Shown piece after piece: positions 33,992 through 36,115 of a stretch of DNA of 64,000 nt. The notes beneath the pieces are model-generated. The model saw only the letters and a program-made list of their open reading frames with translations, made no database searches and had not been told where the DNA came from. Position numbers and translations under genes: made by a program. This DNA is from Podarcis muralis (taxonomy: Eukaryota). The first letter of the stretch is position 1; every line of letters begins with the position of its first letter. The stretch covers positions 108,872,001 through 108,936,000 of the forward strand of contig NC_135657.1 in NCBI RefSeq assembly GCF_964188315.1. Reading direction: 5' to 3'.

Positions 33992-34698
33992 GGTTTAAGA
34001 CGTAGAGTTGCGCGCTGTGGCTGTAAATGAGAAACTGAACTTGAATAAAGACTATTTTATATAACAACGGACTGGCGTTGGTCCTCTGTGAGCTGGGACC
34101 TGAGGCAGCTCTGACAGATGCGTTTGATCTTCTTGCAGTCCATGGGACTCTCAAGAGTCTCCTCCAGCACCATAATTCAAAAGCATCAATTCTTCGGCGA
34201 TCAGCCTTCTTTATGGTCCAGCTCTCACTTCCATACATCACTACTGGGAAAACCATAGCTTTAACTATATGGACCTTTGTTTTTGTTTTTTTGTTTTTTT
34301 TAAAATAAAATTTTTATTGGTTTTTCACCTTTTATAAAGACAAAATACACACAAAAAAGACAAAAGACAAAAACATGTATAATTTCAGAAAATCCTACTT
34401 TCCTAACCTTGTTCCCTGACTTCCCCCCACCCCCCTTCATGCATCCCAATTCCCAAAATTATGTCAGCAAATTGGTATTTCTCCTCTTAACCATCTTAAT
34501 ATTACCTCTTTTATAATAAAAGATAAATTTTTCCTAAGTTGGACTCAAATTCCCTTCCATCGATTTCCCATTTTGTTTTAAAATAAAGGTCATATTATCT
34601 GAACCCAAAGGTCTTGAATGTTTTTTAAAATTCTATTCTTCCCTCCCTCCCATCCCCGGTTTTCGTCCCTTCCCAATACATGTCCAAAATAGCAGTTC

Positions 34699-35286
34699 TC
34701 AGCCAGGGTTTCTCACGTCCGAGGCCTTCCAGTCTCTTTCTGTCCCTCTCCGCCGGTCTTGTTGGTAATCCTTTATGTCAGTCATCGAATCACGGAAGAG
34801 TTCTATCCAGCCATATTCTCTTCCCACCAGGGCATTTGGAATCAACTGCTGAAAAATTTCCACAAAGCCTGCATCTTCAAAGTCAGGGTCGAAGTGGAGG
34901 CCCCAATCATATTTCTTTATTTTAAGTTCCTGTATTTTATAAACTCCCGGGGCCTCCTCCTTCATCTTTTGCATCTTTCGCAGATTTGTAGTAGGTGTAA
35001 TCCAAAAGTCTCCTTGCTTATATTCCACAGGTGCCAGCTCCTGGTTGGTACTTTCCAGCTTTACTTTCTCTTTTTCTTGTTTAGTCTCTTCCACTTCTTT
35101 AGATAACATTTCCGATTCAGCTGTGGATTCTTTCTCATTCAGGTCCACAATACATTCAGCAGAGCTGCTTGTTCCAGAAGTCAAGGTCATGAGTTGTTTA
35201 TTCATAGCAAGACTCTGCTCTTGTAAGATTCCCACCAAATGAAACATTCTTTCAATTTCCACTAGTAACTTTCCTTCCACAGCCAT
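34699..35286 (-). CDS. 195-aa hypothetical protein of the non-autonomous element
   Basis: True ATG in strong Kozak context (ACAATGG); intact to TGA; the only long sense ORF of the element. Confidence 0.7.
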   Translation of the reverse strand: MAVEGKLLVEIERMFHLVGILQEQSLAMNKQLMTLTSGTSSSAECIVDLNEKESTAESEMLSKEVEETKQEKEKVKLESTNQELAPVEYKQGDFWITPTTNLRKMQKMKEEAPGVYKIQELKIKKYDWGLHFDPDFEDAGFVEIFQQLIPNALVGREYGWIELFRDSMTDIKDYQQDRRRGTERDWKASDVRNPG

Positions 35287-36082
35287 TGTAATTTCACAGA
35301 GTTCCCCCTAGAGGGAATCTGGTTACTTGGTAATCTTTCTCCAACAATCCTTTGACTTATTGTTGTTACTTTGTTTCCAACGATTTTAGTTCAGTTATAC
35401 CTCATTTTAGTCCAGAGGGATCTTAAATAACAATTTTTCCGCTCTAAACTGTCCGTTTAACAGCTTTGACAGCTGTCAAACTCCGCACCTCTTCCACAAG
35501 CTCAAAAACAGGACGCTCCCGGGCCCGGGAGGGGGGGTTGTTTACAACAAGAAGAAAACTTCAGAAACTCCACTCTCCAGCTCAAAATTTCTTTTTGCCA
35601 AATCTTAGAAGTTAAAGTCTTTTTTTTTTTTTTAACTCACCCCACAAGGGGTAGGCTCTCCAGCTTAGTTCTTATATCGTTGCTTTAGATCGTCTGCAAG
35701 GGGGGGGGGTGGGGACTTCCTTTTAGCACACCCCCCGATCGTCTCAAATTCACGGGATAAAATTCTTAAAGTCCAATTTCATCTTACTCACGGGTTGTTC
35801 TTTTCATCCGAATTTCAAGGAAGGAAGTCAGCGCTCTTCGGTCATGGCTCGCGGCTTCGCTCAGCTGAGGTAGCGATCGACTCTCAGCGCCACGCCACCC
35901 TCCGTATCCTCTCCGCAGCCTTTAAAAAGGCTCTTCGTGAATCGGGGGGGGGGCGCTTAAGGCGCCCACCGAGTCTTCAGTCCGCAGGCTTCAGCGCCTG
36001 CGGTTTTTAAGGGTCCCCGCGTCGCCGGCGCGGCAAGACCCGTCCTCAGCTGAGCCGATTCCCTCCGCAGCTTGGAGGGGAT

Positions 36083-36115
36083 CCGCCATTTCCAGATCGC
36101 GCCAACCCGGAAGTC
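36083..36115 (-). promoter_or_regulatory. Internal-promoter motifs: ETS site (ACTTCCGG) and YY1-like site (AAATGGCGG)
   Basis: Both lie in the first about 35 nt of the element. YY1 near the 5' end is an established feature of the L1 promoter. Confidence 0.5.

Follow-up and report, generated by a model that had tools for sequence, protein, structure and literature searches.

The ORF1 protein (ORF1p) of L1 retrotransposons is built from a coiled coil, an RNA recognition motif (RRM) and a C-terminal domain (CTD) and acts as a trimeric RNA chaperone. In mammals, the 'half-L1' elements known as HAL1 are described as non-autonomous L1 derivatives that encode ORF1p (Smit 1999; Bao & Jurka 2010, cited in PMC5753468). 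We analysed a stretch of 64,000 nucleotides (nt) from the lizard Podarcis muralis (assembly GCF_964188315.1, contig NC_135657.1, positions 108,872,001 to 108,936,000), referred to as the window, which contains a 1.83-kb element with a single open reading frame (ORF) of 195 codons. This element is probably a full-length and recent member of a lacertid-lizard family of non-autonomous, 'half-L1'-like L1 derivatives with a miniaturised ORF1p, and the lizard family most likely arose independently of mammalian HAL1. No description of a HAL1-type family in squamates was found in the searchable literature, with Repbase and Dfam lying outside the search. The element holds no second long ORF and a Pfam scan for an endonuclease or reverse transcriptase (RT) returned nothing above threshold; lacking a copying enzyme of its own, it must therefore borrow the L1 machinery to move.

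First, the window copy is complete and its insertion was precise. It comprises a 5' untranslated region (UTR) of 829 nt, the 195-codon ORF in a strong Kozak context (ACAATGG), and a 3' UTR of about 397 nt that leads into AATAAA and an A-rich tail. The 5' end begins with GACTTCCGGG; the motif after it, GAAATGGCGGA, is similar to a YY1 core, and the ratio of observed to expected CpG is 1.09 in element nt 1-330 versus 0.35 for the whole window. We presume that this terminus and the YY1-like box serve as internal promoter and start-site determinant, the ETS and YY1 assignments being suggested by motif resemblance. The same GACTTCCGGG also starts the family copies at L001 5150 and L001 3500 and a deleted L1 at L012 5348, described below, while the start at L012 8929 is CACTTCCGGG, in which a C replaces the first G. 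A previous reading of the DNA made without database searches (the sequence-only reading) had described a complete, young element at 34282-36115 with an intact 5' end, a YY1-like site and undecayed CpGs, a 5' UTR of about 830 nt, one intact ORF in a strong Kozak context, a 3' UTR of about 410 nt with AATAAA and an A-rich tail, and neither endonuclease nor RT, and each of these features is present as described, to within a few nucleotides for the UTR lengths. It had also reported a perfect target-site duplication (TSD) of 16 bp; the repeat is in fact perfect over 17 bp, so that the TSD measures 16-17 bp depending on the assignment of base 36115. The 17-mer had 0 matches in dinucleotide shuffles of the window, and its sole other near-match in the window, at 4820-4836, lies in a paralogous copy of the host repeat. 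Deleting the insert together with one TSD copy yields an uninterrupted BovB-type RT C-terminal frame (...SRDITLPTKVHIVKAMVFPVVMYGSESWTIKK... / ...SRDITLPTKVHIVKAMVFPVVMYGSESWTIKKADRRRIDAFELWCWRRLL...); because excision restores this frame, the insertion was precise, and the window element is an ordinary insertion within a BovB long interspersed element (LINE) repeat. Taken together, the perfect TSD, the intact ORF and the high CpG ratio at the 5' end fit a recent insertion.

Second, both UTRs are homologous to those of L1. The evidence for the 5' side comes from Podarcis lilfordi (OX395132.1), where an internally deleted L1, L012:5349-7488, precedes a complete family copy by 1.4 kb. This deleted L1 starts with GACTTCCGGGG, encodes the N-terminus of ORF1 (...KEKQTNLRIR) joined in frame to the C-terminus of an L1 ORF2 (...HLWWTCPRIK...AARILIVKYWKTQDL...), and terminates in an L1 3' UTR and poly(A). 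Compared with the 5' UTR of the window element, it shows 62-70% identity per 100-nt block over nt 1-300 and 43-54% beyond (64% over nt 1-402 by BLASTN), and it has the conserved 5' UTR boxes of the family down to the CCCTCTAG box. Since a deleted L1 shares this 5' UTR, the family 5' UTR is an L1 5' UTR and the 195-codon ORF stands at the ORF1 position. For the 3' side, a 5'-truncated L1 in the window served as local comparator; its 3' UTR at 49609-49956 aligns with that of the element at a local score of 43.5, versus 15.6 +/- 2.3 in dinucleotide shuffles (z = 12.4; maximum 25 of 300), and also matches the family copies L002, L005 and L007. The sequence-only reading had noted a resemblance of the 3' UTR to local L1 3' UTRs and had proposed comparing both ends with L1. 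This resemblance is real but modest (about 65% over about 190 nt), and the comparison now has an L1 counterpart at either end. ORF2 is absent in five of the five family copies that extend beyond the ORF, all of which run straight into the 3' UTR, and, together with the homology of both UTRs, this upholds the earlier description of an L1-dependent element.

These results bear on an alternative in which the family consists of processed retrocopies, or retrogenes, of a lineage-specific host gene whose transcription start would be the shared 5' end. The mRNA-like build of the element would suit such an origin, with a CpG-rich 5' end carrying ETS/YY1-type motifs of the sort often seen at housekeeping promoters, a single ORF and a polyadenylation signal, as would the annotation of two P. 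lilfordi copies as hypothetical proteins. However, a host transcript would not share both of its UTRs with L1, nor would a deletion derivative of L1 be expected to have the exact same 5' terminus. The composition of the family and the selection acting on its ORF speak further to this point.

Third, the window element belongs to a diverse and apparently multicopy family. The DNA taken into the comparison consisted of 15 loci (designated by L-numbers) holding 12 distinct family sequences, among which homology covers both UTRs as well as the ORF. At the protein level, we found 22 homologues of 171-215 amino acids (aa) in addition to two Podarcis gene models (182 and 129 aa) that stem from damaged copies; only two homologues carry a name, both as 'hypothetical' proteins of P. 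lilfordi encoded on two chromosomes, and 33 kb of sequence from two chromosomes of this species contained four family copies. When 1.8 billion representative proteins were searched with a profile, family members alone came back and no ORF1p, and nhmmer with a 5' UTR profile found no additional copy in the window. Contigs from many different sequencing runs carry family members, and small sequencing runs of uncertain type contain 40-64% of the words of the ORF, which is equally compatible with expression and with high copy number; none of the runs carrying ORF words is on record as RNA. Individual copies have the marks of separate retrotransposition events. L012:8930-10723, the complete P. lilfordi copy mentioned above, shares 80% identity with the window element over nt 1-1824 of the latter, and it carries a poly(A) tail of its own together with a TSD of about 14 bp with one mismatch. 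At L001 (3501-5144 and 5151-6521), an older, divergent and frameshifted copy bears a younger insertion of the family in its 3' UTR, about 60 nt past the stop codon; the 3' end of the younger copy and the remaining 3' UTR of the older one are absent, which suggests a later deletion. L013, a copy from a distant subfamily, ends in poly(A) followed by unrelated genomic flank. Moreover, coexisting subfamilies are only 24-37% identical in protein, and each has an intact ORF, the same 5' UTR blocks and insertions of its own.

This depth of divergence is accompanied by constraint on the protein. The ratio of nonsynonymous to synonymous substitution rates (dN/dS), which the sequence-only reading had suggested determining among copies, lies between 0.24 and 0.69 in all 28 pairwise comparisons of eight copies, with dS up to 1.27, although this sample is biased in that the copies were found via intact ORFs. 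Frame, length class and the exact position of the stop codon are kept in 22 sequences down to 24% identity, so that a lack of ORF conservation among copies, which the same reading had named as grounds for abandoning its proposal, is not what we observe. Judged from these comparisons, the 195-codon ORF is under purifying selection, and an open frame of this length cannot have survived such divergence by chance, despite the bias towards intact ORFs in the sampling. Host-gene copies would be expected to decay neutrally, contrary to the dN/dS values, and would not be expected to form several subfamilies that are this far apart and nevertheless each retain an intact ORF behind the same 5' UTR blocks. 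The possibility of a processed pseudogene, also raised by the sequence-only reading, fails on the same ground, as several subfamilies that are deeply diverged have each retained the ORF with signs of purifying selection. With the descent of the ORF from L1 ORF1p, to which we turn below, the derivation from a host gene is largely refuted and we regard it as scarcely credible.

Fourth, comparisons within the family connect the 195-aa protein to L1 ORF1p. The protein itself gave no usable match in Pfam (including Transposase_22), in a PDB sequence search or in the ESM Atlas. For reference, Podarcis L1 ORF1p was assembled from pieces, in which P0023 and P0024 cover the protein from its N-terminus through the coiled coil to where the RRM starts, and P0025:170-422, embedded in a TRIM39-like gene model, covers it from the last part of the coiled coil through the RRM and the CTD. 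Three divergent family members align significantly with this assembly. The N-terminal half of L001old matches residues 56-135 of P0023 (BLASTP E 1e-8; Smith-Waterman z 13.9) and its C-terminal half matches the RRM/CTD part (E 6e-5; z 6.8); residues 52-142 of P0013 align with ORF1p 175-263, a stretch running from the last part of the coiled coil into the first strands of the RRM (E 1e-5; z 7.6), and residues 26-106 of P0010 align with ORF1p 91-184 (E 9e-5; z 7.6). The C-terminal half of L001old in turn matches the family profile with an hhalign probability of 96% (E = 2.8e-9), and the family profile against ORF1p gives only E = 0.011, in the same register as the L001old alignment. The best reading of these alignments is that the 195-aa protein is a miniaturised ORF1p, that is, a colinear and heavily deleted descendant. 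Deletions would have removed the basic region at the N-terminus, the greater part of both the coiled coil and the RRM, and a portion of the CTD, leaving the start of the coiled coil and a basic tail at the C-terminus. Remnants resembling beta1, alpha1 and beta2 of the RRM occur only in the longer members P0010 and P0013; the subfamily of the window element has lost more and is more reduced than the members of 201-215 aa. The statement of the sequence-only reading that no L1 ORF1 motifs are present thus holds for the window copy alone but not for the family, in which L001old, P0010 and P0013 align with ORF1p. Among the origins it had offered, a radically reduced protein agrees with the colinear homology to Podarcis L1 ORF1p that runs transitively through family members, and this speaks against a novel protein; likewise, a captured gene does not accord with the significant alignment of divergent family members to lizard L1 ORF1p.

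In the family alignment, the protein falls into three parts, namely a conserved N-terminal amphipathic helix, a middle that is variable, acidic and rich in indels, and a strongly conserved tail whose last residues, ...RGTERDLRASDVRNPG, directly precede the stop codon, with A188, S189, D190, P194 and G195 invariant in 21 sequences. AlphaFold2 predicts the helix alone with confidence (per-residue confidence, pLDDT, of 79-93 for residues 1-40), in line with the amphipathic helix read earlier from the sequence; the mean pLDDT was 45 with 8 sequences and 49 with 21, and the acidic middle is probably disordered. When three copies of residues 1-80 were modelled together, they packed in register as a parallel bundle, with heptad contacts from residue 3 to residue 36 (ipSAE 0.32 versus 0.07 for the best control; at least 61% of contacts shared between runs; partner pLDDT at least 51). 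The prediction attains the pass mark, as did 21 of 30 proteins known from structures to pair but 0 of 23 known as single chains, a two-copy calibration that is a rough fit to a three-copy job. The model supports a putative self-association of the mini-ORF1p through its N-terminal helix, which is also the most constrained of the regions compared, with a regional dN/dS of 0.23, the lowest value, compared with 0.41 for the middle, 0.40 for the C-terminal third and 0.32 for the C-terminal motif.

Conservation is also seen at the level of the RNA. The first 330 nt or so of the 5' UTR contain long blocks that are conserved between subfamilies whose proteins are only about 27% identical, and within this region lies a structured domain with a long-range closing helix around three arms. 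Seven sequences, the deleted L1 among them, gave an RNAalifold consensus of 78 pairs in which 92% of cells are paired, although the sample is small and amounts to six effectively distinct, related sequences. Changes on both sides were found for 21 pairs, versus 11 +/- 2 in column shuffles (maximum 17 of 500) and 3-5 with slid partners. Six of the covarying pairs belong to the closing helix (GGCUCAGCUGAGG...CCUCAGCUGAGC in the window) and lie about 190 nt apart, so that palindromic protein-binding sites in the DNA are no explanation for them. Folded alone, the window domain adopts the same architecture (minimum free energy -108 kcal/mol, z = -5.4), and it matches no Rfam family. Further downstream are an invariant box, ACCCGTGAGTA, which reads ACCCGTGAATA with one mismatch in the deleted L1, and the palindromic CCCTCTAG box upstream of the start codon; by resemblance only, the former looks like a splice donor or U1 site and the latter like a splice acceptor or a hairpin. 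No copy spliced between the GTGAGT box and the CTCTAG box was seen, and L013 is unspliced. Within the ORF, synonymous positions hardly vary in the last ten codons (window 34702-34731 and the corresponding stretch of 11 loci). There, 12 of 12 DNA copies read GCC TCG despite the CpG that these codons contain, and a GTGAG/GTAAG-like stretch follows. This near-invariance at synonymous sites may hint at an overlapping RNA-level signal.

It could accordingly be argued that the RNA is the sole functional part, in the manner of a long short interspersed element (SINE), and that the ORF is a decaying relic or is useful only as an open frame, for instance for ribosome retention or avoidance of decay. 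The middle of the protein shows little conservation, many indels and low prediction confidence; between distant subfamilies, the conservation of the 5' UTR blocks equals or exceeds that of the protein; and the synonymous constraint in the last codons points to an RNA-level signal. Nevertheless, dN/dS stays far under 1 throughout the protein, even in the middle, and frame, length class and stop position would not be expected to persist across 22 such divergent sequences if only the RNA mattered. We therefore consider this explanation very unlikely and retain the reading of a protein-coding half-L1 family.

Several observations weigh against that reading. Compared directly, the window protein and L1 ORF1p show no significant similarity (Smith-Waterman z 0.8-2.5), and the family profile does not match the Podarcis ORF1p pieces significantly (hhalign probability <4%); the descent from ORF1 therefore rests on the intermediates, and since L001old may be a recombinant, the chain rests mainly on P0010 and P0013. 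The reference is itself inconspicuous to standard tools, as Pfam does not recognise the Podarcis ORF1p pieces (P0025:170-422 and P0024) as Transposase_22 at E <= 1 and a PDB search likewise misses them, which also means that domain scans will overlook lizard L1 ORF1 proteins. The designation of the 3' comparator as L1 is based on its architecture, its poly(A) and TSD, and its ORF2 C-terminal features. Furthermore, the target site, TTTGTT/GG on the primed strand, is only a loose match to the preference of the L1 endonuclease, and both mobilisation in trans by L1 ORF2p and RNA binding by the mini-protein are steps that we infer.

Under the half-L1 reading, we propose that the element would be transcribed from its CpG-rich internal 5' promoter and that the mini-ORF1p would be translated and, by way of its N-terminal helix, oligomerise on or close to the RNA that encodes it, giving rise to a ribonucleoprotein (RNP) in cis. 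The polyadenylated RNP could then borrow ORF2p, with its endonuclease and RT activities, from a co-resident autonomous L1, and ORF2p would insert the element by target-primed reverse transcription, leaving the A-tail and the duplication of 16-17 bp. The family may in this way hijack or modulate L1 RNPs, as the sequence-only reading had proposed. As a tentative and rather doubtful extension of this model, the RRM might be dispensable, the coiled-coil helix and the invariant C-terminal tail might co-assemble with or displace L1 ORF1p or recruit ORF2p, and the covarying 5' UTR domain might be the RNA handle in the hijacked L1 RNP.

A different possibility is that the mini-ORF1p acts on L1 and not for the element that encodes it, either by capturing RNPs through co-assembly of coiled coils or as a dominant-negative inhibitor of L1 that may be favoured by the host. 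The retention of an oligomerisation helix in a protein that has lost the RNA-binding RRM, the strong constraint on this helix and the self-association predicted by the three-copy model would all be compatible with such a role. On the other hand, the helix of the window copy has diverged beyond detectable similarity from the coiled coil of the sampled L1 ORF1p, and the copy sits as an ordinary insertion in a BovB repeat and not at a conserved host locus. We consider this role unlikely and favour a mini-ORF1p that serves its own element. The positions of the features discussed are listed in the table.

Table. Features of the half-L1-like element and of the local L1 comparator, in window coordinates.
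Feature	Position	Strand	Basis or remark
Complete non-autonomous L1-derived retroposon, 1834 nt	34282..36115	-	5' UTR, one ORF, 3' UTR, A-rich tail
Target-site duplication, A-tail side	34265..34281	.	Perfect 17-mer repeat CTATATGGACCTTTGTT
Target-site duplication, 5'-end side	36115..36131	.	CTATATGGACCTTTGTT; base 36115 is the last TSD base or the first G of the element
AATAAA (34313-34318) and 20-nt A-rich tail (34282-34301)	34282..34318	-	Direct sequence reading
L1-homologous part of 3' UTR (G-rich polypurine tract, then T-rich stretch)	34336..34518	-	Local alignment to L1 3' UTR
ORF, 195 codons and stop, putative miniaturised L1 ORF1p	34699..35286	-	Homology through L001old, P0010, P0013
Conserved C-terminal basic motif, residues 160-195, ...RRRGTERDxxASDVRNPG then stop	34702..34809	-	Family alignment
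N-terminal amphipathic helix, residues 1-36, presumed coiled-coil oligomerisation module	35179..35286	-	pLDDT 79-93, lowest dN/dS
CCCTCTAG/GGGG palindrome about 20 nt upstream of ATG, splice-acceptor- or hairpin-like	35304..35315	-	In window copy, L001, L008, L009, L013, deleted L1
Invariant box ACCCGTGAGTA, splice-donor- or U1-site-like	35785..35795	-	Identical in five aligned 5' UTRs: three Podarcis family copies, L008, L009
Structured 5' UTR domain, element nt ~13-300, core 35851-36061	35816..36103	-	Long-range closing helix around three arms
Conserved 5' terminus GACTTCCGGG (ETS-like), then AATGGCGGA box (YY1-like)	36081..36115	-	Same bases start other Podarcis copies and the deleted L1
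5'-truncated L1, local comparator: ORF2 C-terminus, ~350-nt 3' UTR, poly(A), 18-bp TSD TAAACATTGGCCATGCTG	49399..49956	+	

Beyond the element, the long ORFs of a long terminal repeat (LTR) retrotransposon at 31269-33991 directly adjoin the BovB fragment that was hit by the insertion, and further L1 ORF2 C-terminal fragments are found in the window at 72-263, 6691-6883, 41071-41265, 42716-42918 and 59816-59914. An ORF at 43440-43949 (-) encodes a lysine-rich helical stretch and looks like a host-gene exon that may resemble the C-terminus of phospholipase C-beta. With regard to the lizard L1 proteins, the C-terminal 250 or so residues of P0025 and P0026, both TRIM39-like RING/B-box gene models of Podarcis muralis, are L1 ORF1p (end of the coiled coil, RRM and CTD), and this part represents either an exonised L1 or an annotation artefact. 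A likeness between the C-terminal motif of the mini-protein and the WQQPRRG... stretch near the N-terminus of ORF1p was dropped as not significant (E = 0.17).

Finally, an independent half-L1 lineage in lizards, if true, would be a natural deletion experiment on ORF1p. A protein cut down to a coiled-coil helix and a short basic tail, and yet selected through deep divergence, points to the parts that are needed for copying by ORF2p in trans; if the mini-protein acts on RNPs, the family would reveal the minimal ORF1p needs of an L1 parasite. In addition, the covarying 5' structure of about 290 nt, common to the family and an L1, is a candidate for a functional RNA domain in the 5' UTRs of lizard L1s.

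Among known systems, internally deleted L1s such as L012:5349-7488 and P0023 have the same 5' and 3' UTRs and have lost most of their coding sequence, but they are one-off fusions of ORF1 and ORF2, whereas the half-L1 family, with a conserved ORF of its own and several subfamilies, would be a propagating lineage. SVA elements, other composite L1-dependent retroposons and SINEs are likewise non-autonomous, polyadenylated and dependent on L1; in contrast to the lizard element, which is protein-coding, 1.8 kb long and wholly L1-derived, they are non-coding with Pol III or composite heads. No small-RNA head (tRNA, 7SL or 5S) with a Pol III promoter, the mark of a SINE, was found in the element, for which Rfam at E <= 1 gave a single sub-threshold chance match and no tRNA-like match. 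With L1 ORF1p itself, the mini-protein has in common its position in the element, a predicted N-terminal coiled-coil helix, residual colinear similarity in divergent members and a predicted parallel self-association. It differs in its presumed deletions, which affect the N-terminal basic region, the coiled coil and the RRM (most of each) and part of the CTD, in its acidic middle, and in a C-terminal motif, ...RGTERDLRASDVRNPG, that has no recognised counterpart in ORF1p. The closest parallel is HAL1, which resembles the lizard family in its L1-derived ends, a single ORF at the ORF1 position, the absence of ORF2, a poly(A) tail and TSDs, as well as in its presumed trans-mobilisation by L1 ORF2p and its independent, recurrent origin. 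However, HAL1 is described as encoding ORF1p, whereas the lizard protein has about half the length of lizard ORF1p, has its RRM largely deleted and has no Pfam or PDB match; moreover, the host is a lacertid, and the absence of a sequence relation to mammalian HAL1 is what would be expected. The analogy with HAL1 drawn in the sequence-only reading therefore holds for the architecture and not for the protein, which is incomplete where that of mammalian HAL1 is not. As a complete ORF1p with coiled coil, RRM and CTD is not encoded, we regard the element as HAL1-like in its working, but as a reduced variant.

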